Source of the DNA: Anthoceros angustus | Lineage: Eukaryota; Plantae; Anthocerotophyta | Length of the DNA: 64,000 nucleotides | Direction: 5' to 3' | Assembly: GCA_010909165.1 (NCBI GenBank) | Contig: VJWM01000254.1 | Span: 1-64,000 of the forward strand | Part shown: piece by piece, positions 2,411 through 25,846 of the stretch | Position numbering within the stretch: position 1 is the stretch's first letter | Layout: each line of letters starts with the position of its first letter | The notes under the pieces: generated by a model | What the model saw: only the letters and a program-made list of their open reading frames with translations | What the model was told of the DNA's origin: nothing | Databases searched by the model: none | Translations under genes and position numbers: made by a program

Positions 2411-2529
2411 TCACCCATCATACCCTATCCAAGTCTAATCCCACCTAAAAATAGTCTGTGGCTTAGGTTAGATGCCTTCAATCATGGTATGAGGCATCCT
2501 AATCGGGACCGCAGCTACTCATGGCGATG

Positions 2530-3650
2530 TTATCGACAATAGAATTTCTTGAGGTGAGACCCACTTACCGTCTCCGCAGCTTCCAGATCAGACGGTTTCA
2601 CCACATCTACTGACCCATTCTCATGTATCTTTTTGACAAGCCATGGGCCTTCCCAACGCGGCTTCAGCTTCGCCCCCGACTCCCTTTTGAGATACCTGCG
2701 GACGTTTAGCCTGAGGACCCATTCTCCCACAGAGAAACCGAACTCCTTCTTGTCCTCATCATACTTTTCTTTCTGCTTGAGTTTCTCTTCTTCGATGGTG
2801 AGGTAGGCTGCTCTTCTAACCTCATCCAATTCATGCAACTGTACAATCCTTGCATCTTCTTCCATAGACATAGCCTCCAGGATGCCGAATCCTCTTGTTG
2901 CCGTAGTGACCTGAGAGGGTACCCTAGCAGGTACTCCGTATACTAACTCGAAAGGGGAAACTCCCACAGCTGTTTTAACACGGGTTCGCATGGCCCAGAG
3001 GGCACCATACAGGTGTTGATCCCAGCGTTGTGGCTCATCCTGGCAAAGTTTAGACAACACTTTAATGGCTACCTTGTTTGAGCTTTCAGCTTGACCATTA
3101 TCCATAGGATGATAGGCCGTTGTTAACCTATGCTTGACAAAGAACATGGACATGACTTTCTCAACCACCTCGTTGACAAACTCTCGACCTCGATCTGACA
3201 CTATCTCTACTGGACATCCAAACCTTGTGATCACATGATGGTACAGGAAGTTCCCTACCATTTCTCGATAGTGCCGACACTTCTTCAACCCACTTGGTAG
3301 CATAGTCGATTCACATTATGTAGCGATTGCCATGAAATGACAGGGCTGATCGGACCTATACAATCAATACCCCACTTGACAAAGGGACCGCTAGGAAACC
3401 TTTGGACACAACAAACCACGCCGGTGACACTTGAGCAAATTTTGGCGAGACTACACTGCAATACTCACGAACATCCTTGAACAAGGTGGGCCAAGAAAAC
3501 CAGCCCTCGAATCTTTTGACCGATTGCGGTTGCATCAAAATGACCACCACACACGAGTCATGCATCTCAAAAGGATCCGAGTATCTGTCGCCCATACACA
3601 CAAGCGTAGGACCCTATCGGGACCGATTCTAAACAACTTCCCTTCTATCA
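2530..3650 (-). CDS. Retrotransposon integrase (frameshifted)
   Basis: ITRFGCPVEIVSDRGREF, TTAYHPMDNGQAESSN, SPFELVYG and the GPY/F motif KLKPRWEGPW. Confidence 0.95.
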
Positions 3651-3829
3651 TGGTGTATGCTTTCGACCAAGATTGTAACTTCCTCTTCATGCTTGGATCA
3701 GCTCCTTCCGGCATTTTCCTTTCCTTGAGATAATCTGCGATTTGTCCATACAAGGTTGCAGGGTTTTCAATCTTTACAGCTATCGCTCGGAATGTCGTAC
3801 CTGTGTTCGTCCTTGCATTCCTGCAGAGA

Positions 3830-4180
3830 CCTGCATCAGCCAACTTATGTGCCTTAATATTCTGAGCTTCGTCGATGTGTAGAAAACCCACTCCATCCAT
3901 TGTCGCCACAAATCTTGCGATCTGTATCAAGACTGGGGTTGCCACTGTACTAGCTTGGCTCAGAAATTGGACCTCAAGCAACATTCACGAGTCATGGCTC
4001 TTGATCATTACCGCTTTGCTCCACACTTGGCTGCTTCCACTAACCTGCCAGATCGCCATTGCCGGCCCTCCTTGTGGTTACGCGGCCACGGTCCTAGATA
4101 TCGAGCGGATCCGCACTCACGGGGAGATCTCACTATTGCGCCAATCCTGCGTTGCCAAATAACACGCTACGCGCTCGTTC
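3830..4180 (-). CDS. Second, degenerate RNase H1 (aRH)-like domain in pol
   Basis: Frameshift-joined NAG-IGAIVRSP ... AMAIWQ-LVEAAKCG-KAVMIKSHDS*MLL ... FLHIDEAQNIKAHKLADAG repeats the aRH motif order. Confidence 0.55.
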
Positions 4181-4235
4181 ACACTCCGGATGTCCGTCGG
4201 CTTCTTCCTCATACTCATCCAGACGCGAAGAACTC

Positions 4236-7200
4236 GACATACTTACGCGCAATTCTTAGAGACATGGCTTGTGAACCCGCGATGGTTTGTTCCTCCTTCA
4301 AAGCTAATTTGGCGGTCCAAGAAGCTCGTTCCTTTGTCGTGGCACATGTGTCAAGGACACGCTTCAAACTTCGCATTAGCTCCAGCTGTGGTGAAGAGCT
4401 CTCAAATTCCTCGCACGCACTTCATATGTTCCATGCAAGCTTGACAAGTAGTTGGCTATCCAGAAAGCATTGAATCGCACTCTATCATCGCTAGCTTTAA
4501 ACCATGTAGGAAAGCTTGGTACTCCGCCTCGTTGTTAGTAGCTAAAGGAATCGCAAAGCTTTCCTTCACAGTTTCCTTTGCATCAGGGGCCACCAGTACC
4601 ACACCTACTCCAGCGCGACCATGCGCCACAGCTCCATCGGTCCACAATTTCCATGTGTCAGCATCACTCAATGCGGATGGGTCAGCCCAAAGTGCAGCCA
4701 AGGTTGGGTTACCTTTTGTTTCCTCTTCATCGGCTTCTTTCTTTCTCCTATGGCTTGGCACAGTGAGAGTCAGGGCTTCCTCCATTTGCTCAGACTGACC
4801 TTGAAGACTGGAATCGATGCCCTTGCATGCATATCCACACAGGCCTGCCTCCAACTGTCTAAATTTTAGTGACTTGATCTGGACTTCAAAGTCATATCCT
4901 GAGAGTAGACATACCCATTTTGCAAATCGTCCGGTAGGATTGGGTATCATCATCGTATCGTGCCGCATGTAGGCTAACCGGAAAAAAATTTGCACGATGC
5001 CGTAATGGTGGAACTTCTTCGTTCGCAACCATTCTGCCGTCACTTGCTCAAACGCATTGTACCTAGTCTCACATCCGGTCATAAGCCTACCTGCAAAGTA
5101 TATTGGCAGGTACAGCTTAGTCTCATCATCCTGCTGGAATAAGCTGTATTCCAGAGATGCCCTTGTTACTTCCACACTCACATAGAATGTCCTTGACCAA
5201 TCTGGTGGTTTCATGACCTGGGGTGACACCATTAAATTTTGTAACCGCTCGTAGGATTCCATCATTGGTTCATCCCATACCGCCTCGATTCTTCCGTGGA
5301 TTTATGCGGAGGTCTGCTACCTGTGAAATTGGGTATTAACCTCCTGTAGTAACTTGCTGTACAAATGATCTTACTTCCTCTATGCTAACCGGAAAAATTT
5401 GCACGATGCCGTAATGGTGGAACTTCTTCGTTCGCAACCATTCCTGCCGTCACTTGCTCAAACGCATTGTACCTAGTCTCACATCCGGTCATAAGCCTAC
5501 ACGCAAAGTATATTGGCGGTAGTCTCATCATCCTGCTGGAATAAGTTGTATTCCAGAGACGCTCCTGTTACTTCCACACTCACATAGAATGTCCTTGACC
5601 AGTCTGGTGGTTTCATGACCTTGGGTGACACCATTAAATTTTGTAACGCTCGTAGGATTCCATCATTGGTTCATCCCATACCAGTTCACGATTCTTCGCG
5701 TGGATTTATGCGGAGGTCTGCTACCTGTGAAATTGGGTATTAACCTCCGTAGTAACTTGCCTGTACAAATGATCTTACTTCCTCTATGCTAACGGGCCTT
5801 GGCGAAACTTCTTGATCTTCCCAGTTCGCATGTACACCTTTGGAATCAATCATGAACCCCAAAGTTCCCCTTGATGACAAATATGCACTTCAAGGATTTA
5901 ACCCGATATTTGCTAGGGTCGACAGAACACTTCCTCCAAGTTTCTGGATGATCGACTCTTCTCCCATACACGGCAAAGTCATCTAAGAAGACACGTAGGA
6001 ACTTCCTCTTGTGGTGCCGAGCCTCCATCATGACTTCACGAAAACAAGATGGCGCATTGCAAAGGCCGAAGGCATTACCTTGTACATGAACACACCCCAT
6101 GGTGTCACAAAAGCGATCTTGGTGATCTTCTTCACAGATAGCGACTGATGAAATCACGAATAACCATCGCAGAAAGAGTATGTCTCGTGACGAAACCTCA
6201 TCCGACGGCAGCCCGACATACTTACGCGCGCACAGAGACATGGCTTGTGAACACCTCGGCGATGGTTTTGTTCCTCCTTCAAAGCTAATTTGGCGGTCCA
6301 GTGAAGCTCGTTCCTTTGTCGTGGCACATGTGTCAAGGACCTTTTGCTTCAAACTTCGCATTAGCTCCGAGCCTGTGGTGAAGAGCTCTCAAATTCCTCG
6401 CACTTCATATGTTCCATGCGCTTGACAAGTAGTTGGCTATCCGCAAGCATTGAATCGCACTCTATCGCTAGCTTTAAACCATGTAGGAAAGCGGTACTCC
6501 GCCTCGTTGTTAGTAGCTAAAGGAATCGCAAAGCTTTCCTTCACGTTTCCTTTGCATCGGGGCCATCGGCACCACACCTACTCCGGCGGCCATGCGCTGA
6601 CTCCATCGGTCCACAATTTCCATGTGTCGGCATCACTCAATGCGGATGGGTCAGCCCAAAAGTGCGGGGTTGGGTTACCTTTTGCTTCCTCTTCATCGCT
6701 TCTTTCTTTCTCCTACGACTTGGCACGGTGAGAGTCGGGCTTCCTCCATTTTGCTCAGGTGTGAAGGCGGAATCGATGCCCTTGCATGCATATCCACAGC
6801 TGCCTCCAACTGTCTAAATTTTAGTGACTTGATCTGGACTTCAAAGTCATATCCTGAGAGTATACATACCCATTTTGCAAATCGTCCGGTAGGATTGGGT
6901 ATCATCATCAGGTATCGTGCCGCATGTAGGCTAACCGGAAAAAATTTGCCTGATGCCAGGTAATGGTGGAACTTCTTCGTTGCTGCAACCATTCCTGCCG
7001 TCACTTGCTCAAACGCATTGTACCTAGTCTCACATCCGGTCATAAGCCTACCTGCAAAGTATATTGGCGGTGACAGTCTCATCATCCTATTTGGAATAAG
7101 CTGTATTCCAGAGATGCCCTTGTTACTTCCACACTCACATAGAATGTCCTTGACCAATCTGGTGGTTTCATGACCTGGGGTGACACCATTAAATTTTGTA

Positions 7201-7770
7201 ACCGCTCGTAGGATTCCATCATTGGTTCATCCCATACCAGTTCATGATTCTTCCGCGTGGATTTGTACAGAGGTGCTGCTACCTCTGTGAAATTGGGTAT
7301 TAACCTCCTGTAACTTGCCTGTACAAATGATCTTACTTCCTCTATGCTAACGGGCCTTGGCGAAACTTCTTGATCTTCCCAGCTCGCATGTACACCTTTG
7401 GAATCAATCATGAACCCCAAAGTTCCCCTTGATGACAAATATGCACTTCAAGGATTTAACCCGATATTTGCTAGGGTCGACAGAACACTTCCTCCAAGTT
7501 TCTGGATGATCGACTCTTCTCCCATACACGGCAAAGTCATCTAAGAAGACACGTAGGAACTTCCCTCTTGTGGTGCCGAGCCTCCATCATGACTTCACGA
7601 AAACAAGATGGCGCATTGCAAAGGCCGAAAGGCATTACCTTGTACATGAACACACCCCATGGTGTCACAAAAGCAGTCTTGGGCTGATCTTCTTCACAGA
7701 TAGCGACCTGATGAAATCCTGAATAACCATCGCAGAAAGAGTATGTCTCGTGACCAGAAACCTCATCCAG
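4236..7770. repeat. Internal tandem duplication of the RT C-terminus/RH/aRH region (about 4236-6203 vs 6214-7770), with a nested ~415 bp duplication near 4972-5790
   Basis: The same sequence blocks recur, e.g. CTTGACAAGTAGTTGGCTATC at ~4440 and ~6421, and GGAAAAAATTTGCACGATGCCG at ~4980 and ~5391. Confidence 0.85.
4290..5265 (-). CDS. Gypsy RNase H plus additional archaeal-type RNase H (aRH), copy A
   Basis: PPDWSRTFYVSV, PIYFAGRLMTGCETRY and RFAKW (RH); WKLWTDGA, AGVGVVL, TNNEAEYQAFLHG, DSQLLV and HVPRQRNE (aRH). Confidence 0.9.
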
Positions 7771-8010
7771 TATCTCATCCACATGAGGAAGGGGAAACCT
7801 GTCCTTCCTCGTAGCTTTGTTTAACTCCCGAAAGTCGACACACATCCTAATTTTCCCATTCTTCTTCATCGAAATTACTATCGGGGATACCCACTCCGGA
7901 TATTGCACCGCTTCTATGCATCCAGCAGCTTTCAACCTCATTACTTCTTCCGTACCTCCTGCATGCGTCGGTGACAACTCTCAGTTCACACCCTTGGTTT
8001 TGTGCTGCGG
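6214..8010 (-). CDS. Reverse transcriptase, RNase H and aRH, copy B (frameshifted)
   Basis: WVSPIVISMKKNGKIRMCVDFRELNKAT, FPLP, DGYSGFHQV, KTAFVTPWG, MPFGLCNAP, VFLDD. Confidence 0.95.
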
Positions 8011-8479
8011 ATATCGATTTTGAACTTGCGTAGGTTCGTAGTTGGCATTTCTTCGTGCCCGATGATGAACAAATGTTCATATCGGAGAAAAGATTCTGTA
8101 ACGCTCAAGTTCCTCTCCTTCTATGTCCGTACCAACTTTGGCAACCTTCGACACCGTTGGCTCCAAAAACTTCAATTCCTTCAAGTCGGGATGTTGGATC
8201 ATGCGAGTTTGAGCTTATCTTGGGCCAATCGAATGGATAGGATGTGGAGTGTCTCGTTCATCGTTGAATGCCTCTGGTGAAATCCACCTCTGGTCCGAAC
8301 CACTTGTCACCATACAGAGGCTTGGATCCTGCTTTGAGGTGCTACTTGTCATGTTGAACTCTCAGTGCCATGCCTTGATCGAACCGGTCTGTTGGCGGGC
8401 CAATTTCCGTGATTCCAGATCCCGTGGTGATCGGCTTTCACTAACTCTAACCATGGTTGGCCTAGGATGACACCATATG

Positions 8480-8760
8480 CCCGGCTCGGGAAGTTCCACA
8501 ACGGTGAAACCTATCCATACTCTTACTCCGTGAACAACAACCTTGATGTTTTCCGGGACCCCACCACAGGAGCTTTGTATTGACGATCTCAAGACTTGCT
8601 TACATGCTAGTTTGCGGGTGGTACCTAGACCAAGATCTTGAGCCAAGCGGCATTGATCAAGTTCGTAGATGACCCTCCATCCACGACGGCCGGGACCTCG
8701 ACCTCATTGATCCAAGCCCGTTCGCGGTGAGTCGTTTTGCGGAGCCATCCAATCGGTCGG
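8480..8760 (-). CDS. Retroviral-type aspartic protease (frameshifted)
   Basis: AWINEVEVPAVVDGGSSTNLI (D[T/S/G]G catalytic motif). Confidence 0.85.
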
Positions 8761-9137
8761 TTTGATGAGTCAGGATTGCCAGTTATCGTCAATGTTGTGG
8801 CAACTTCCCCTTTTAGCTTAGCCTTTCCCTTCTTGTGCTTCAACTCCCGAGTACTTAAGGCAGCGGTGATCTCTTGTCGTGCTGCAGGGAGGATTCCGAA
8901 CAGCTGCCTGAATGTCATTTTTACTTCCCTATCTGCAAGATCTTCCACAAGTGAGTATGGCGGTGCACTGCTGGCAATTGGAGGAACAACGCTCCTTACG
9001 TCTTCGCCTCTTAGGCTTCTCGAGCGCCGATGTCTTCCATCTCTATTTCGGCCCACACTTCCTTCTTTCCTTTGTTGTTTCGCCTCTTTTGTATAGTCAT
9101 CTTGACGTCGGATTCGGAGGCGTTTTCTTACCCGCGG

Positions 9138-10195
9138 CTAGCAGAAGCGCACGATGGTTGCCTTTGTTGGCATGCAAGCTTCGGTGAAGACTCCTCGGAC
9201 GACAATCTCCTCTTCTGGCAGCGGTGGGCGACGGGTTTCCCCAGTTGTCTGGCCTATAGGTTTGAGCGGTACCCGACCACGACCTCGTGGTGCACCTCCT
9301 CGACCTCGGCTGCTGCTGCTTGACGAGTTCTTAGGACATCTCCACTCTATGTGGCCATGCTCCCCAGCTAACACATGGTGTGTTCATGCACAACTCAGTG
9401 TGTTGAGATCCACACTTCTTGCATGGTTCACGGGGCTTCATTGTTGTCGGCTCATGTGTCTTCCCGACCGCCATCCTCGTGATCATGGCCTCCAACTCGT
9501 TCACTCTCTTTGACATCATAGCCAGGGGTCCTCCTTCGATTTCTTCATCTTGTGCAGTTTTTCTGTTTCGAGATGGCGCTCGAATGGGGCTCTCGGACGA
9601 TGAAGGATCTGAGTCCGGCGAATGGCTCCTGCTACGATGGCGTTCTCGGTGGCGAGGCTTACTTGGCTTGGTACGTGAGGAAACTTTGTTTTTTTTCATG
9701 GCTAGCTCAATGACATCATCCAAGGTCCTCTCTTCATCTTCCATCCGGCGGGTGTAAAACTCATTTCTTAAGCCATGTATGAACTTCCGCTTCACCTTCT
9801 TGAGTTTTCCGCCTTCCTTTGTGTAGCCTAGCTTCTTCACTGTCCTCGTCCGCTCCACATATGTTGCGATGGATTCACGACTTTCCGACTGTAATCAAGT
9901 CGATCTTCAATCCTTGTGGAAAGACTCACTTGAACTTGGTTAAGAAGGCAACACAGCACTCAGTCAACACGAAGCTCATCCTCCAATGTCTCATACCATA
10001 CTGGACTCCCTTGCGAGATCGGAAATACTTCAAGTACTTTTTTTCTGTTCCCATCAAACGAGCTTTTAAAACCTTCTTGAACAACCACAGATGTTCGTCA
10101 GGATCTTCATTTGGGGACCCATAGTACTGTGGCAAGGTATTGGGGTCAAGACCGGGCTTCATAGACAGGTCAGATCCTGAGTACCCCATGTCCAC
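9138..10195 (-). CDS. Gag with zinc knuckle(s) (frameshifted)
   Basis: LPQYYGSPNEDPDEHL, KFIHGLR, CKKCGSQHTELC and the CCHC remnant GEHGHIEWRCP. Confidence 0.85.
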
Positions 10196-10533
10196 AAGCT
10201 ACTTTCTGTCGGACAGGCTGGTTTCTAACAACCCACACTTTCGGCGGACTCTTTGACTATCCTAAGAAAGAGGAACTGATATGATAGAGGGAGTTGGGGA
10301 AAACCAAAAGGAAGACGGGTATCTTCTGGCAGCAAAGCAATCATTTCTTTTATGGTCAGCCTTTTACTACCTCCTGCTCTATTCCTATTTGTCAGTTTTG
10401 AAACATTCCTCATACTAGGACTAAGCAATGCTGGAAACGCTGGTTCAGACGTGTATGATACCCAAGGGATGTGGTAGTCGTGGTGTATGCAGAACGCAAA
10501 ATCTGATCTTCACACCGCTTGCTATCGAGGACA

Positions 10534-11740: not shown

Positions 11741-12574
11741 CTATGGTGAAGACCAGTACAGTCCTCTTGTGAGGGTGGAGTAAAACTGGGGACACTGGAA
11801 GTTCTTCTCGCCTCCCCATTTGACCTCCATATCCGTGACCTTGCGAATCACGCTTGTTAAGATGCTCAACACATCTGCCGTTTTAGAGCCCTCAATGATG
11901 GCGTCCATAAAAGCTGTGATAAAGTTTGTGCCTTTCCCGGTATCTCTGAAGGATTGTTGTCCATGACTGGTGGAGTAAACAATGAGACAATCGCAAAGAT
12001 TCCGGGGCTCGGACTTCTCCGGCTCTCTTGCTCACCACTTGGCTCTCCTCAACTTCAGAGTCCTCGGCTTTCTTGATTTTGTAAGGCTGTCAATTTGTCG
12101 ACAAGCATTGATCACAAAGACCTTAGGCTTGTTTGCAAGATACCTGGATTCAGAGATGGGCTTCACGATATCATCATCAACATATAGCTTCTCCCCACTT
12201 GCTTCACTTATGAGGATGTAATCTCGTCCATTTTCATCGATCCCCCCATGGGCATTAATGCAACACAGAAAGCAATCGTCATTAGCCATGGTAGGGAGCT
12301 TGGCAATTCTCCTAAGATAAGATTTGACGTCCTCAGATTGGTTCACCACTATATCCGTATCGAACGCCAAATTCTTGAGAAGAGCTTCAAGTCGCCCTCT
12401 GTCGACAGCTCCACCAGGTCTGTCCTTTTCTATGCTCACAATCACTGCCAAACCTCTTCGTTTGCCTGCTGCCACACGGTCATTAGGATAACTCTGCAAA
12501 ATGTTGTACTCACTGCCTGCACTTGCGGGATAGCTGTAGGAGTTCCCCGACATACGCTGTTTTTGATTTCGATC
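11741..12574 (-). CDS. Caspase-like peptidase (clan CD, family C14A-like), p20 + p10
   Basis: p20: RRGLAVIV, DRPGGAVD, DCFLCCINAHGG (His 12248-12250), LANKPKVFVINACR (Cys 12101-12103). In the same frame after TGA 12032: p10 DCLIVYSTSHGQQSFRDTGKGTNFITAF...DVLSILTSVIRKV...QCPQFYSTLTRGLYWSSP*, stop at 11741-11743. Confidence 0.9.
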
Positions 12575-12703
12575 CTACAACAAGTGCAACCTCAGAGCAT
12601 GCAAGGAACAATGTATACTACAAATTTGGCAGTCATCCTACTAGAAACTACTTCTCGAAAACCAGGACATTCAAACGCATTCAGATGGTTCAGAAATCCT
12701 AAC

Positions 12704-14260
12704 CTTCAGACTCTAGTTCGGCTCTGGCCAGATCCCTTTTCGCCCCAAGATGACGTGCCCATCTACCACGGTTGCATACTCCTTGTTGGCCTTTAAAATA
12801 GGTGGCTGGGCTTGTGTACTGGTGGAGATAGGTCCCCAAAACTGCGTGTAGTGTGCATAGCCCTTTTCTTTTGTAGTAGCCACCTCCTTGACAAGCTTAT
12901 CTGTTAGAATGCACTGATGTTTTCTGTGTCTACATGGCGTGAGGGCCACTACACATTCACGCCTCAGGACACCTTCAACTAAGGTAACCCTGCAACCTCA
13001 TGAAGCACAAAATGAGCAATTTGAGATACAATATGCTCTTGCAAGAACGATAAGGACCTCAAAATAACCTTGATGGATCGAGCTAATATATCTATGTAAC
13101 AACCTATTTCGCATTAAATTCTACAAAGATATCAAGAAACTCTGCGGATATGAGAAATGTGCAATCTTGATCATCACATTGTAAACGCAAACCGATAAAG
13201 ATGTAATCAATCAATCTAACATCCTCATCAACCCAACGTTTCTTCAAACAATAATTGTACAATAAAACCTATCACACATACAGACAAAAACAATGTAGAC
13301 GTGGTCAATAACAGAAAACATTCAAAAACCAGTGTTGCAAGTAGGACTAAGGAAAGATTCATCTTTGAAAGAGTTACATACTTGCAACCGAGGGAAAAAT
13401 CCTGGTGTGAGAAATGTGCAATCTTGATCATCACATTGTAAACGCAAACCGATAAAGATGTAATCAATAGAATCATCCTCTGCATCCTCTGCAGGCCATT
13501 CTAGTTGTCGATTTGCTCCTGCTATATCTTCTTCTCCATACATACATGTTGGTATAAAGTAACGAACTTGATCTTCTCCATCTCTACTTTCCAAACAAAG
13601 GTGTAACTCAAGAAGGAGTTGGATAAATTGTTCTTCGCTCACAATGGTCTCTTCAAGCCCAACCTTGTTCAAAGACATCTTTAGAAGCTTGCTCAACCCA
13701 CACTTGCTTATAAACCCATTTTGAAGCCAATCTCGTCCATCACCAGTTCGCCAAATATTCCAATCAATTGACCAAAAACCCCCATTCCCAGCCATTGGAG
13801 GTTAAGCACCACAAGCCCTGATATCTCAAAATATATGATCTCCCCGGAATCCTTAAGGTACGATGCAACCACTTTCCAACTATCCTCCTTTACCATGAAA
13901 TCCAAAAGAAATCTTTTATAATCCTCCGAGATGTGTGGATGCTCTAATGCCACCTTACATGTGTTATGGAATAACTCACTAAACTTGTCAATAGAAATGA
14001 TTGGGGTACCTTGTTGGTCTTCAGCCCACCTTTGTACATGTATCCTTGTTTGCTCACAAATATTGGGAACTGGGGCCAAGTTACTAACAACTTGATGCAA
14101 CTTCTTCTCCATACTAGTGCGCAATGCATACACATCTTCCCAACTTTGTCCATTGATAAAAGTAGGTTCATACGATAACTCCACCAAATTTTTAAACTTT
14201 TTCTTCACCAATAACATCTCTTCACATATTGCAACAGAATGCTTATCCCCTTGAAGCTTG
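12704..14260 (-). CDS. COR domain and TORNADO1-like C-terminal region (frameshifted)
   Basis: YLKDSGEIIYF, LVVLNLQWL, YFIPT, IGLRLQCDDQDCTFLTPGFFPRLQV, YIDILARS and GVTLVEGVLRRECV match TORNADO1-family motifs; intron 13269-13381. Confidence 0.85.
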
Positions 14261-14795
14261 TCACCAAATGTTACGATTACATGTACATAAGGTTTCACCT
14301 GTTGACCCAATCGCATTGGAAGCAATAAATTTTAACCAATAAATAAATTCTTCCCTGAAATCTTTTCTATCCTTCATATCCATGGTTGAGAAATTCCCAC
14401 CGAACTTGAATGGATTGTAAACAAATAAGAAGACAGAAGAATTATTAACATTAGGAAAAACAAAATCATGAAGCGCGTGATACTCTCTATGGCCTGCAAG
14501 GTCCCAAATTGTAATCCTTAATTCGGGAACATCTTTTATCACCTCCACTTCAAATCCAAGTGTTCGAGGTATCTCTTTCGAAATTGTTTCGCGTTCCATT
14601 TCAGCATAGTCTTCATGTGTCTCCATCTTCATCAAAGTGTTTCTTATGGTCGTTTTGCCTGCGACAAAATCATTTTAGTGATCATTCCTAACCGGTAAAT
14701 ATGAGCAATATGAATACACGTCACTCGCTCTACATTCAACATGCCCTATGCCGCTTACCTGCGTATGGAAATCCACAAAGTACAAGGCGACATGA
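14261..14795 (-). CDS. Roc (Ras of complex proteins) GTPase domain
   Basis: P-loop SCRLVLCGFPYAG|KTT split by intron 14659-14758; switch I PRTLGFEV; G3 ITIWDLAGHREY; G4 IVTFGDK after a frameshift. Confidence 0.9.
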
Positions 14796-16180
14796 TTAGA
14801 TTGGCATTGTGGGAATTCCTGCCAGAGCTCTTCTATATTCCTTGTTTTGCCGCAGCACTTCATCCACTGCAGCACCTTTCCCCTGCCTTTTCCACGCAGT
14901 GTTTTCGAAAGACATACGCTCCAGATTGGTGTTCACCTGCAGAGTCTGCATGAGCTCTCGAAACATATCGTCATCCAACCCCTTCCAGTCATCCAATACC
15001 AACGTCTTGAGGTAGCGATTGGTCTGCAACGACCTGAAAAACATCTTCGAGAGGTTGCACGATCCCGCACGCTCCTGAACCAGGTGCAAACGTTTCACGA
15101 ACTGGCACCTCTGCAGGATTGGCATCAGTTTGCAGTAGTCGTCGTTATGGCTAGAGTAATTCTGTCGGACTGTCACACGAGTGATGCTGCTGTTGTCACA
15201 CAGTCCCTCCAATCCCTGGCTTATGAGACAGCTAGATAGCTCTAAATGCGTTAAAGTGGTGTTGGCGCGCAGCATGCGGGCCACAGCTTCTCCCAATGAA
15301 GCGTCGATAGGCTCGTGGCCAGATCCAAATATGTCTAGCCGGAGTTGTCTGACAGACTCGTTGGCAGAAAGAGGCTTGGGAGCAACACTCCCAGCCTCCT
15401 GCTCTGCGTCCTGCATACCAGGGGTCAATGATCGGGCCAACAGCATGGCCGTTATCCCTGCCTGCTTTGGCTTACTTCGGTTAAATCCTATGTGCAGGTG
15501 GTCAAGCGTGGTGTTTTGTGCCAGAGCATTCCCTATCTTCAACGCTCCCGCCTCATCCATGCCTATATCGGAAATCCCCAGGTCGCGAAGGGCAGGAGAG
15601 CTAGTCAGGATGTCAGCCAGGTGGTCTGCTCCACCACCTTCCACTAGAGTGTCTCCAGAAACATACAAGCTGCGGGCACTTTCTCCTATGGTCGGGTTCC
15701 CAGAAAGAAACAAGCTGCGGAGCACCGAGCTGCGATTCTCTCGCAGGGCTGCAGCTATGCGACCCAGTCCATCGGCAGTCATGCCAGTGCATCCCATATT
15801 AAGACATTGCAAGGTGCGGCTCGATCGCAAGGTAGCTGCCAGTGCAATGCAGGCTCCACCTGTTCCAAACCCACGGTACCCACTCAAATCCAGCAATTCC
15901 ACTACTGCATTCGAGTTAAGACCTTCCAAGAACGCCGTCGCCTCTGCCACCGTCACTGTGCAATTTTGACGCCCTAGAGGGTCGAGCTCGATTGATCTGA
16001 GCGTGGGACATTTACCCATAGCTGTCATAAGGCGCAAGCGCAGTTCCTGTTCCGCCTTTGGATGTTCAACGTCCATCTCGAACAAGTACCCATAGGCGTC
16101 CACACGAGGAAGCCGACTGAGAGTAGGCGAAGGTGACTCGAGCTCCGCAAGCAGGGCAAGCAGCTCCTCAGACACAGGAA
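14796..16180 (-). CDS. Ribonuclease-inhibitor-like LRR block B
   Basis: Repeats such as LRSSRTLQCLNMG, LRSLFLSGNPTIG, NTTLDHLHIGFN, NTTLTHLELS and NRYLKTLVLDD. Confidence 0.9.
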
Positions 16181-16480
16181 CTGGAATGGTGACAACAAAG
16201 ACAGGGAATCGAGTCAAAACGGCAGACTTGCATTCATGATTCAAACGTCTACATAGTTTCAACAAAAACAACCGCAGCTTGGAAGTTGGAATGTAAGTTG
16301 TTCCATACCTGCGTCGCCTGAGGAGCTGGCCATAGTGGCCATCGCCGGTAGTGGCACCTGTTCCGAACCTGCAGAAGTGACAGAAGTCAGATCCCTGTCA
16401 TGTCTACCTAGTTTTTGGGTTCTAACTTGTGAGACATACAGATGAAGGACAAGGGTAGCTAGCTAGCTTGGGGCACCTAC

Positions 16481-17853
16481 CCTGCCGTCCAGCGCTTCTT
16501 CTCTGTATGTTCTTTGTGAGAGCATTCTGGATGCGTATCACTTTGCCTTCACTGTCCCAGGATGTGTTCTTGATGGAAATGTTCTCCAGAACGTTTTTGC
16601 AGTTGGGTCGCAGAGACCACATCAAGTCCCGGAACATGTAGTCATCCAACCCATCCCAGTCATCCAACACAAGCGTCTTGAGGCTGGGGTTGTTGTGCAA
16701 CCCTCGGAAGAACTCCTTGGTGAACCTGCTGGCCCCGTAAGGTTTCACAAATATGAGCCGCAGCTCCTTCAGAGTCTTGCACTTCTGCAGGATCTCCATC
16801 ACAAAGGGATCCAGCTCCTCGTCCTCCACGGAATGGTAGTGGTGCAAAAACAGTGTCGTGATGCTGCTGTTGTGAGCCAGTCCCGACAACCCGCGGGTCA
16901 CAAAAAAGCTGGTTACGAGCAGGAACTTCAAAGTGGTGTTCGATCGAAGCATGGCAGCCACAGCTTGTGCGAGCCCGGCCTCCGCAACCACACCCTTCCC
17001 CCCTGCCAGCCCCAGTACCTCAAGGCAGAGCTCGGTGATGGACTGGTTAAACGGAGGAGCAGCACTTGGACCGTCAGACTCCTCCTCCGACGAGGACACA
17101 TCGCAGCTTAGGGCTCTCAAAACAGGGATCAACATTGCTGCCTGCTCAGGGTCCTTCTGCACGTTATATCCGATATCAATCCTGTTCAGAGTTCTGCTGC
17201 GAGCCACAGCGTCTGCAATCACCACGGCGCCCGCACCATCCATCCCTATCCCGAATATCCCGAACACTTTCAGAGCACGACAGTTGGACAGGATGCCGGC
17301 AACCTGTTGCGCCCCGGCAGCATTTCCTATCTCATTCCCATCGAGATACAACACGCGGAGGACAGATCCGCTGTTGTCTCGCAAGGCTGCGGAGATATGC
17401 CCCAGGCCTTCCACACTCAGCTCGAGCCCCGCAAGTCCAGAGTCCCCAAGCTGCGACTGTGTCGCAGGACGGCATCAGCGAGTGCAGCGCACGCTTCCGT
17501 CGTCCCGAATCCTTCGATGCTGCACAAGAGCCTTTCCAACACCGGATTGCGCTTCAACCCGTTCAGCAATGCCAATGCCTCCACGTCCCTCACGCTGTAC
17601 AACCCGAGCTCCCCAAGGGATTCAGATGGATCGTCTTGAGGCTCCGGCAGTTGCCGATGGCGGACATTATCCGCAAGCGCAGCTCCCGCCTGGACGCGTC
17701 TGAATCACGCTCCCCGGCCAGGAAGTAGCTGCCCCAGGAATCCGCAGGAGGAGGGAGAGCTGGCAGGCTCGGGGAGTCGGACTCGAGGCTGACGAGCAGG
17801 GAAACCAGCGCGGCGGGAAGAGGTGGAGGCGGAGGCGGAGGCGGTTCCGCCAT
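16481..17853 (-). CDS. Ribonuclease-inhibitor-like LRR block A (two frameshifts), Pro-rich N-terminus
   Basis: MAEPPPPPPPPLP..., LRVLYLDGNEIG, NTTLKFLLV and NPSLKTLVLDDWDGLDD; collinear paralog of block B. Confidence 0.88.
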
Positions 17854-18826: not shown

Positions 18827-21800
18827 TCACAAATCCTTGAATAAGTCTTGTTCTTCTGGACTTAAGATGAAGTCATCTTTAGGAGCGTCAAGTTTTGAAT
18901 AATCATCAAAGTTGCTTGCATCTTCAGGACCCTGTATGATTTAAGGGTGTGCATTATTCCCGCGTTAGATATTGTTTCATCTATAAACATTTTACTAATG
19001 TGAGAGGAAAGGAAGCATTGTAAAACATGAAATAGGGTGGTGGCTACCGAGACTTTGGGCCTTATAGGAGGCATATCTCGTTTTCTTAATACATTATCCC
19101 AATCCAAATTTCCAAACCATGCATGTGTCTTAATATCTTTTACACCACCTTTAAGACAACCAATCCTACAAACCCACATAGTCCACGGTGAGTTCAAATA
19201 TATTTTTGAATCAACAGGGGTTACCAAAGGATTTGTCAAACAATTGTATGAAACGCAAATTGTACAATGACTTGTCAAAACTTGACGCTCCTAAAGATCT
19301 CTAACTAAGCAACTTTGATGCTTAGATGTCTCATCAAAGATGTCCTAAAGATGTCATTCATACAACGTTGTATGAATGATACTAGTTAGGAAAAGTACCT
19401 TTTTGTCAAATCAGCTTGTAACAGCCTTCTCACCAAATCCTTAGCACTGCTTAAAATGAAGATGAAAACCATCATATACATATCTGATGTTTTTAATTAT
19501 ATAATATTAAATTAAATATTATTTCATATAAAATCTTACTTCCTAGAAAAGTGCCCAGGAAATTGTAGTTTCCCACTTAAAATCTTTTGATAAGTTCCCA
19601 TGGGATCTGCAAAATAATATTAATTTGAGTCCGATTATCCAGCGCAACTTTTAGTGTACTTGGACTTGAATTTTGTGATGTCTAAATATGTCAAGTTGCA
19701 GGGGCTCAAGTCATATGCCTTCATCGTAGAATGGGGGATATCCAGCTAACATTTCATAAATTAGGACGCCAAATGCCCACCTGTATTTTTACATTATGAA
19801 ATACATGTCACATCTAACTAATTACTTTAATCAATTTACATTTGAAGAATATGCTCATTGAAAATCTTATGACTTATTATTCTTTGTGATATTGCATATC
19901 ATGTTTCATATATTTTCTAACTTATATGAAAACATATACAAGTTTCACATGTAGGATAAATATCTTTATGATTATGCATATTTACTTATACAGGTTTCAC
20001 ATCTAGTATGACTATCTATATCATTACATAAGTAAATATGCATATGCATATTTACTTATACAGGTTTTACATGTAGTATGACTATCTATATCATTATGCA
20101 TACTTACTTATATAGGTGTCACATGTAGTATGATTATCTATATCATTATGCGTATTTATAAAGGACAAAAATTCTTACCAATCAACAGGTTTCCCATGAC
20201 CTTTGTTCAAAATGATTTCGGGTGCAAGATAATCGGGCGTACCTAGAGAGTTTTGACAAGTATTATAGCATGAATATAAGCATTTTTTAAACAACTCTTC
20301 ACCATTTCACTAGAAGGGCAATAAAAAAAATATTTTTTTGACAAGTATTTTAGCATGAATTACAACATTTCTTGAAACAACTCTTCACCATTTTACTAGA
20401 AAGACCGATAAACAAAATATCTTATTAGAAGCAACTAATACCACAAAGTGTGTACGTTCTATGATCAATCTGCTTGGCAAACCCGAAGTCCGTGATTTTA
20501 ATGTTCCCAATCTCGTCCAGCAAAAGATTTTCAGGCTGGAGTAGTGAAATAATTAGTTTTCAATTTTATTTTATATCCTTCCGCATTCTTCATCACATTC
20601 ATTATAATTCACCTTAAGATCTCGATATATAATGTCCATGTTGTGAATATGTTCAAAAGCAAGGAGAACTTGGGATGCATAAAATCTCTGGAAAACAAGG
20701 TCACTTGTCATTATATATTTTCAAGTTTGTCTTCAATGTTCCAAGAAATAGACTTGGTCATCATTGTTTTTTTGCTCTTTGGTGAAAAGCATATCGAATT
20801 AGAGCTTATCATAGTGAACTTAGGAGATTGTTACTCTTTCTCCAACAAAGTATACCAATATTTCGGAAGTGTGGAAGAAAGAACACAAAACATACAAACA
20901 TTTAACCATTATAAGAATACCATACTAACCGTAGTATTTTCATCGAACCGTCCAGTTGTGCGAAGATATGTGAAAAATTCTCCGCTGAACCACATGCAGC
21001 TCTGTTCAATAGTCTAACAATACAAATCACTAGTTCACTTTTTAATTGGCTATGTTGCTTTTAAAAATGCAAAGAACTGAGTGGATTCATTGGGGTAGGT
21101 ATCGTTTAGAAAGTTCAACAAGAGCAAGCTGATGAATAAGAATCATAAAGAGCAATAGACACTTACCCACAAACATATTCTAGGACAAGGTGTACATTTT
21201 TTTCATCTTGACAATAACCAAGGAGATTTACAATAAATGGGAAATCAAGTCTGTGAAGGATGCCTTTTTCTTGCTTTACATGAGAAACCTAAAAGTGTCA
21301 AAGGTACCCCATTAAACCATATCCATATATGCAAAATATAAAAGTTTGAAGATTTTTTCAATCTCAACAAACTATGCCATCAACTTATTGTATGTACCTG
21401 TTTAGTCTTGACAATTTGCGATTTTGATAATGATTTTACTGCACACACTTGATTGGTTGCAATATGGTGAGCATATGACACTCTGCCAAAACTACCAGTT
21501 CCCAAAATTTTACCAAGTTTGAAGTCTTGAATTTTGCATCCCTCAAACCATGGCTGTCACATCACAAGCCTACGTCATTTTCAATCTTCTGACCAAGAAA
21601 CTAGGATTTACTTGTAGGACAAGGATAAAGCTATAAGGTCTTATGGGTCATTATTCTAGATGTGTTATGACTTAGTCTTCTAAATCTATAGTTGAGCAAA
21701 ATAGCTGAGCGTCGGTTATTTGTGAGCGTCAAGGAATGAACTCATTTAGTACAATGTTGTAATAGTCAAATCAATTTGGGTGTCAGTCATTGAACTGAAG

Positions 21801-24834: not shown

Positions 24835-25247
24835 AAGAAACTGGCCATCCCTAGAACAACGGGAAACGGCGAGCTCTAGAACAAAAGAAAACCGACGAGC
24901 TCTAGAGTAAGAAAAACTGACCAGCTCTATCCTAAGAGAAGACCGGCGAGCCCCAGAATAATGGTAAATCAGCGAGCCCCAAAATAATGGGAAATGAGCG
25001 AGCCCAAAATAACGGGAGATCGACGAGCCCCAGAATAACGGGAAATCGACGAGCCCCAAAATAACGGGAAATCAGCAAGCCCAGAATAACGGAGATCGAG
25101 CCCCAAAATAATGGAAATCGTGAGCCCCGAATAACGAAATCGAGCCCCAAAATAGCAGAAATCAGCAAGCCGAATAACGGAGATCGTGAGCCCCAAAATA
25201 ATGGGAAATCGGCGAGCCCCAGAATAATGGGAAATCAGCGAGCCCCA
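24835..25247 (+). repeat. Minisatellite, ~25 bp unit GAGCCCCA(A/G)AATAA(C/T)GGGAAATC..
   Basis: About 16 degenerate head-to-tail units; related units recur at about 27475-27720. Confidence 0.9.
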
Positions 25248-25612
25248 GTTTGGAGTTTTCCTGTTATTCAGCAACTCACCGTTTTACCAATGGTCATCGT
25301 TTCCCTATTCTTTTGGAGCTTGTGGTTATCCTATTGTTTTGGGACTTGTGGTTATCCTATTGTTTTGGGGCATGTGGTTATCCTATTGTTTTGGGGCATG
25401 TGGTTATCCTATTGTTTTGGGGCATGTGGTTATCCTATTGTTTTGGCACTTGTCGTTTTCTCGTTAATTTGGTGCTCGTCGTTTTTCCCATATTTTTGGG
25501 CTCATCGTTTTCCGGTTAATTTGAGGCTCGTCATTTTTCAGTTATTTTGGGGCTCAACCCTAGCGCAAACTAGTGGCGCTCACAAGACTTTGCAACACTA
25601 CAAGATATTCTC

Positions 25613-25846
25613 AAACTTGTCTCAATATTCATGAAAATGGTGCATCATGATGTCTTTATATAGGTTTTCGTAATCAAATAAAAAGTGATCAGCATGAAGT
25701 AGAAGAGAGAAAGTGACAATGCCCAAAACTATGTCTCAATATTCATGAAAATGGTGCATCATGATGTCTTTATATAGGTTGTCGTAATCAAATAAAAAGT
25801 GATCAGCATGAAGTAGAAGAGAGAAAGTGACAATGCCCAAAACTAT
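25613..25846. repeat. ~115 bp tandem duplication
   Basis: TGTCTCAATATTCATGAAAATGGTGCATC...GCCCAAAACTA occurs twice. Confidence 0.9.

Follow-up and report, generated by a model that had tools for sequence, protein, structure and literature searches.

A minus-strand gene at positions 11741-17853 of a 64,000-nucleotide (nt) stretch of the Anthoceros angustus genome (assembly GCA_010909165.1, contig VJWM01000254.1, positions 1 to 64,000; hereafter the window, to which all coordinates refer unless another locus is named) belongs to a multi-copy, transcribed plant gene family, in which two leucine-rich repeat (LRR) modules, a Roc GTPase, a COR domain and a caspase are fused. The initial annotation of this locus had proposed such a single-chain architecture, and the proposal is supported, as (i) all five introns appeared to be spliced in RNA-type sequence data, and (ii) relatives carry the C-terminal part of COR (COR-B) and the caspase in one exon or in one frame. 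The family probably serves in immunity or cell death.

Gene structure and the COR-caspase junction

The six exons encode, in order, LRR, a linker, LRR, Roc-COR, COR-B and the caspase, and extend over ~5.5 kb and ~1,840 codons. All five introns are bounded by GT..AG and are 100-129 nt in length. Exon pieces were searched one by one, by reference, against Pfam and PDB, and the gene model was compared with two sequencing runs, X1 (a DNA run) and X2 (an RNA-type run, with joints at all five introns). The features are as follows.

16481-17853, minus strand: exon 1, ATG at 17853, LRR module A; frame breaks near 17610 and 17420
16369-16480, minus strand: intron 1, 112 nt, GT..AG, phase 1; spliced in X2
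16309-16368, minus strand: exon 2, 60-nt symmetric phase-1 linker exon; both flanking joints in X2
16181-16308, minus strand: intron 2, 128 nt, GT..AG, phase 1; spliced in X2
14759-16180, minus strand: exon 3, LRR module B (LRR_6, E 4e-5) and the first half of the P-loop; in-frame TAA at 14798-14796
14659-14758, minus strand: intron 3, 100 nt, phase 1, within the P-loop; position as in the relative L001
13382-14658, minus strand: exon 4, Roc GTPase (GKTT, PRT, WDLAG; G4 degenerate) and COR; frameshifts near 14310 and 13745
13269-13381, minus strand: intron 4, 113 nt, phase 0 after PRLQ; spliced in X2; donor position as in L001 and L002
12704-13268, minus strand: exon 5, C-terminal COR (COR-B-like) with several frameshifts; matches the N-termini of the homologs P0004, P0011 and P0012
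12575-12703, minus strand: intron 5, 129 nt, GT..AG, COR-to-caspase join, probably phase 1; no counterpart in L001 and L002
11741-12574, minus strand: exon 6, linker and caspase, stop at 11743-11741; breaks near 12560-12490, 12080 and 11992
12421-12419, 12250-12248, 12103-12101 and 11947-11945, minus strand, within exon 6: the caspase residues equivalent to Arg179, His, Cys and Arg341, respectively

LRR modules A and B lie in tandem and are ~41% identical to each other. Roc was detected at 14264-14659 (Pfam E 1.5e-7, 32.1 bits versus a cut-off of 27), and the two Roc motifs named in the initial annotation are indeed present: CGFPYAGKTT, which is split between CGFPYA and GKTT by the phase-1 intron 14758-14659, and WDLAG. 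Besides these G1 and G3 motifs, a degenerate G4 (TFGD) was found. COR-A, at 13711-14325 directly after Roc, is weak in Pfam (E 0.042) and scored 0.96 in the Atlas search, and a profile built with the relatives matched the solved Roc-COR structure of a Roco protein (3dpu; E 6.7e-5). Within exon 5, positions 13150-13212 are a near-exact 60-nt duplicate of 13408-13470 that interrupts COR-B, being either a real insertion or a local misassembly.

The 129-nt GT..AG intron predicted at 12703-12575, between COR and the caspase, is present, and X2 splices it (joint 12559/12703, depth 109); the 18 letters between the two sides of this joint agree with the beginning of the acceptor exon, apart from four additional ones. 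X2 showed little or zero depth within introns 3 and 5, and an X1 contig passes unspliced through intron 5. Because the runs contain just 39% of the window's words and many of their contigs are 90-99% alike, the splicing evidence applies to the family or a close allele, and not surely to this copy. The initial annotation also had the acceptor opening directly in the caspase frame (DRNQKQR-MSGN). That frame probably does not hold, as (i) in the phase-0 reading a TAG at 12715-12713 lies three codons ahead of the donor, (ii) the RNA contigs carry one additional nt at 12736, and (iii) the homolog P0012 aligns to the alternative frame (ILGSKKDVTRAS versus ILG.KRDLARAE). The phase-0 junction was therefore rejected; the junction is probably phase 1, like introns 1-3, and the open DRNQKQR frame is most likely a by-product of additional small indels in the linker. 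We also noticed in X2 a minus-strand GT..AG joint from 16309 to 12867, which connects the linker exon with the mid-part of the COR-B exon at a depth of 290 (versus 315 for the normal joint) and is absent from X1. This joint is in frame and would yield an LRR-caspase without Roc, stemming either from alternative splicing or from a paralog with a deletion.

The same join recurs in relatives. A phmmer search of 1.84 billion proteins with the p20 half of the caspase gave 132 hits, and the nearest named homologs belong to the hornwort Nothoceros and the liverworts Marchantia and Riccia, with the COR-caspase join only in the hornwort ones. The locus L001 (SRR33208241), which encodes P0004, comprises the end of the LRRs, an intron at the same P-loop position and in the same phase as in the window, and then Roc-COR, which ends in RLQ at the same donor; COR-B and the caspase follow in one exon. 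P0011 (L002) is similar in having COR-B and the caspase in one exon, the join is in frame in P0012 (L009), and the Nothoceros transcripts P0010 and P0141 carry a COR-B-like sequence ahead of the caspase in one frame. Word-based protein searches with the p20 half, the COR piece and the Roc-COR alignment, which are length-limited and uninformative on full-length kin, recovered the query itself only.

The surrounding DNA is that of a land plant, with a Tubby gene and several intact frames as long as 500-1,000 codons. ORFs resembling dyskerin and serine carboxypeptidase and ORFs with ARM repeats were recognised by eye, as were decayed LTR-retroelement-like pieces downstream of the gene (~2500-10200) and an AGC-kinase-like C-terminal fragment upstream of it (18860-19290), for which Pfam gave no match. 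Short peptide motifs repeated in several frames at 24900-25650 suggest a tandem-repeat stretch. Neither a paralog of the gene nor a gasdermin-like ORF was noticed elsewhere in the window, although no search aimed at gasdermins was made.

The caspase clade and its genomic contexts

Peptidase_C14 (PF00656) was detected in both halves of the caspase (Pfam E 4e-15 and 4e-13), and the PDB matches of both halves were animal caspases only (caspase-8/-2, E 3e-6; ancestral caspase-3/6/7, E 3e-6). The His/Cys dyad is present in the window (NAHG and NACR), and the arginines of the S1 pocket (Arg179 and Arg341 equivalents) are kept both here and in most members of the clade. The predicted model of the intact relative P0004 (pLDDT 89) has six core strands without the beta7/beta8 insert of metacaspases. 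Its fold matched caspase-9 (Z 30.2, rmsd 1.9 over 219 residues) and caspase-8 (Z 29.6), followed by MALT1 (23.3), Arabidopsis metacaspase 4 (19.3) and the bacterial GSU0716 (18.4); the alignment behind the model contained many animal-like caspases, and thus the fold match is not fully independent. Initiator caspases are activated by dimerisation, and by the criteria given for the caspase type (PMC4357240) the protease is caspase-type and capable in principle of forming a beta-6 dimer, with a predicted specificity for Asp. A metacaspase or paracaspase (C14B) identity was rejected, on the grounds of the basic S1 pocket, the six strands, the lack of Ig domains and zero C14B sequence matches in PDB.

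In the tree, which is unrooted and has no metacaspase outgroup, in which most other rows lack taxonomy, and in which the window caspase is represented by its p20 half only, the 16 rows of the plant set form one side (support 100/99) and the sampled animal-like caspases fall opposite. Three sequences with an NxCR motif from marine-type assemblies (P0015, P0046 and P0049) adjoin the plant set (98/99). A Picozoa protein (P0018) is also caspase-type, with the NACR motif. Such sequences suggest that non-metazoan caspases are more widespread. Pattern scans of metagenomes, bacterial genomes and viral contigs, which are insensitive, found no kin. Across the hornwort, liverwort and NLR-linked sequences, the members of the clade show identities of just 30-47%.

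Caspases of this clade are not restricted to Roco proteins. In five distinct proteins on other plant-like contigs, the caspase exon lies upstream of NB-ARC or NB-ARC-LRR exons, in some cases with a hydrolase-like exon between them.

L004, 1849-5561: caspase before NB-ARC-LRR
L007, 540-6746: caspase before NB-ARC-LRR
L011, 645-5838: caspase before NB-ARC-LRR
L013, 139-5984: caspase before NB-ARC-LRR
L003, 9953-18611: caspase before NB-ARC-LRR

The joins are predicted ones: the L004 donor and the acceptor that opens NB-ARC are both phase 1, and in L007 the phase-1 donor is matched by a phase-1 acceptor at a hydrolase-like exon, with NB-ARC further on. The caspase-NB-ARC arrangement of L004 is present in a tandem repeat. 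In Marchantia, the caspase follows alpha/beta-hydrolase domains, and P0005 and P0006 have hydrolase repeats ahead of the caspase. The liverwort caspase-type proteins P0005, P0006, P0014 and P0038 (Marchantia Mp6g00900/Mp6g00860/Mp5g08650, M. paleacea and Riccia) have the dyad intact where covered. The alpha/beta-hydrolase is a known N-terminal domain of bryophyte NLRs, and a caspase N-terminal domain is not listed in the same survey of plant NLRs (PMC11218826). These contexts point to the caspase clade as a putative mobile immune effector.

Proposed function, opposing evidence and rival explanations

The explanation that we prefer, and consider rather likely, is that the LRR-LRR-Roc-COR-caspase proteins are receptors for immunity or cell death, which act through COR-mediated dimerisation of their caspases. 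The LRRs would sense a cue derived from an invader or from damage, and the cue would either shift Roc-COR between a monomer and a COR-mediated dimer or lift an autoinhibition of the dimer by the LRRs. Two C-terminal caspase domains could in this way be brought together and dimerise along beta-6 like those of initiator caspases, and the dimerised caspases would cleave a substrate after Asp and thereby set off defence or cell death. The best argument in favour of an immune role is that the caspase is mobile among sensor scaffolds. The chances are about even for a broader proposal, in which bryophytes possess a clade of true Asp-specific caspases used as a plug-in immune executioner, placed behind Roco in hornworts, behind hydrolases in liverworts and before NB-ARC-LRR, with or without a hydrolase, in other plant-like DNA, the Roco-caspase being the one-chain equivalent of an inflammasome. 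The likeness to the inflammasome, as to the bacterial and brown-algal systems described below, would be one of operation.

The immune reading was already part of the initial annotation, and the caspases found in phase before NB-ARC-LRR have strengthened it. Its switch may need revision, and both the Roc of a relative and the state of the copy in the window qualify it, as described below. Roco proteins cycle between monomer and dimer via COR, and the bacterial Roco that has been studied is a dimer when empty or GDP-bound and a monomer with GTP (PMC5714945). Since GTP yields monomers there, a switch in which sensed GTP brings the caspases together may run in the opposite direction.

Several observations weigh against the preferred explanation. 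First, no full-length Roco-caspase protein occurs among the 132 hits from 1.84 billion proteins, and the spliced contigs may derive from paralogs or another strain, given the 39% of words. Second, the pentapeptide QACxG with Gln283 is not matched (NACRQ in the window, Asn clade-wide), albeit Gln to Asn is a conservative change that occurs in some non-plant rows too, and three members of the clade (P0009, P0011 and P0016) lack the His or the Cys. Third, in L001 (490-800) Gln stands in place of the P-loop Lys and the DxxG motif has disappeared, yet the caspase retains its dyad; the Roc of L001 is probably a pseudo-GTPase scaffold. Given such degeneration in one relative or more, the GTPase of the family may act as a modulator, or may provide no more than a scaffold.

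Finally, the copy in the window carries ~12 frameshifts or stops between 17610 and 11992, including in the caspase (stop at 12034-12032), which is more damage than the initial annotation recorded. These breaks are located as follows.

Breaks, minus strand: near 17610, 17420, 14798 (stop), 14310, 13745, 13110, 13017, 12736, 12560-12490, 12080 and 11992

X1 and X2 alike have a sense codon at 14798, one additional nt at 12080 and two at 11992, the latter two of which keep the caspase linker open in the reads, and X2 has one additional nt at 17610. X1, on the other hand, lacks a frame-restoring base at 17610, 13745, 13017 and 12736, again to the disadvantage of a working copy. Over 12559-12876, only a single letter and a single gap separate an X1 contig from the window. 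Bases are missing from the window at 10 of 11 indel sites (p 0.012), and only two sites lie beside homopolymer runs of four. Pure long-read error was rejected as the full cause, as the indels rarely fall in homopolymers and several breaks are common to X1. We read the copy as broken as assembled, by genuine decay combined with a degree of assembly error or strain difference. A pseudogene undergoing decay, on which some assembly errors are superimposed, is a more probable reading than a functional allele, and it is doubtful that this copy works.

Four rival explanations should be considered. The family may be real and yet act in development or patterning like TORNADO1, or in non-immune proteolytic signalling. 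TRN1, so far the one plant Roco to have been studied, acts in patterning (PMC4104024), and the top Atlas fold match of the L001 Roc-COR is the Tornado 1 cluster, albeit a weak one. On the other side, the same caspase clade sits ahead of NLRs, and the tandem LRR duplication, the many paralogs and their decay fit with immune families that evolve by birth and death; we regard this rival as improbable. Alternatively, the caspase domain of a Roco receptor may be a non-catalytic or weakly active scaffold or c-FLIP-like decoy, or a bait for pathogen effectors. The three members without the His or the Cys and the Asn in place of Gln283 are in its favour, whereas the His, the Cys and both S1 arginines are kept here and in most members despite identities of 30-47%; this rival, too, we regard as improbable.

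If the caspase were a separate gene from the ATG at 12553, the fusion would be mere adjacency or a rare read-through. An ATG-led ORF is present at 12553-12032, and the junction contig has a depth of 109 against ~1700 for the flanking exons, with only ~43 nt on the caspase side. Nevertheless, splicing removes intron 5 in RNA, COR-B and the caspase share a single exon in two relatives, and both lie in one frame in a hornwort transcript. The possibility raised in the initial annotation, a separate gene with no relative sharing the fusion, was thus not borne out and is largely refuted at the family level, which leaves it very little probability. A recent transfer from animals or bacteria, or contamination, finds some support in the animal identity of every PDB match and was rejected as highly improbable, as the caspase forms part of a spliced plant gene that sits amid ordinary plant genes, the proteins closest to it come from Marchantia, Riccia and Nothoceros and keep to their own side of the tree, and the bacterial and viral scans, both of low sensitivity, gave zero kin. 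This rejection applies to recent events; an older transfer, into an ancestor of bryophytes or of land plants, may have occurred.

Comparison with known systems and implications

The closest design is bacterial. Kaur et al. 2021 (PMC8195603) described bacterial counter-invader proteins of LRR, AP-GTPase (Roc) and COR with at least 24 C-terminal effectors, including CASPASE (e.g., OQX07365.1). The bacterial LRR+Roc+COR+caspase proteins share with the plant gene the domain order and the proposed logic, in which a variable LRR sensor is coupled through a Roco switch to a caspase-like effector at the C-terminus. They are themselves known by prediction only, while the plant gene is spliced, has ~1,840 codons and two LRR modules, and carries a caspase whose closest kin are eukaryotic. 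The plant fusion is probably convergent with the bacterial design. The architecture had thus been predicted in bacteria, and no description of a plant caspase-Roco or caspase-NLR was found in our literature and supplement searches. As far as these searches reach, the design is known by prediction and its plant version with an animal-type caspase is undescribed.

Among plant proteins, TORNADO1 is the obvious comparison. We take the Roc-COR of the window to resemble it in motifs, and both are land-plant proteins with Roc, COR and repeats of the LRR_6 type. TRN1 has been described as LRR with a C-terminal ROC-COR (PMC4104024). The present gene differs in the caspase in place of the TRN1 tail, the multiple copies with decayed members and the duplicated LRR module. 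The model of the L001 Roc-COR (pLDDT 45) has 'Tornado 1' as its top Atlas match (TM 0.33), which, the model being poor, is a lead only. The gene is not TORNADO1 itself; in line with the initial annotation, the caspase follows COR in place of the TORNADO1 C-terminus, and any orthology to TORNADO1 is putative.

Another comparison concerns Rocos with a C-terminal peptidase of IPR009003, which is presumably a trypsin-like fold. Brown algae and other SAR lineages possess expanded LRR-Roc-COR families with pseudogenes, group 3 of which carries a C-terminal peptidase (PMC11378527, PMC3341825). The group-3 peptidase of brown algae is the IPR009003 one, and a caspase is unmentioned in PMC11378527. Bacterial and brown-algal Rocos have been proposed as immune receptors (PMC8195603, PMC11378527). 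Among proteases, animal initiator caspases (caspase-8, -9 and -2; MEROPS C14A) are alike in the six-stranded fold, the dyad, Arg179/Arg341 and the p20-linker-p10 order; the plant protein differs in having no CARD or DED, in an activation platform fused in cis, and in NACR instead of QACRG. Metacaspases (C14B) and MALT1 share the clan and the Pfam family PF00656, and gave lower fold scores (Z 19 and 23 versus 30). They cut after Arg or Lys, whereas the plant caspase has a basic S1 pocket, and neither the beta7/beta8 insert nor Ig domains.

Caspases have been stated to be restricted to animals and lacking in plants (PMC10896300, PMC12521494). A spliced and transcribed caspase-type domain in bryophytes challenges this animal-only view. 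The Marchantia homologs Mp6g00900 and Mp6g00860 are annotated but unstudied, and offer a tractable model for plant caspase activity, while the family as a whole offers a natural read-out for what the monomer-dimer cycle of Roco proteins controls. The pairing of the caspase with both Roco and NB-ARC scaffolds suggests that plant immunity has a branch which was lost or has been overlooked, and which converges on bacterial and animal designs.

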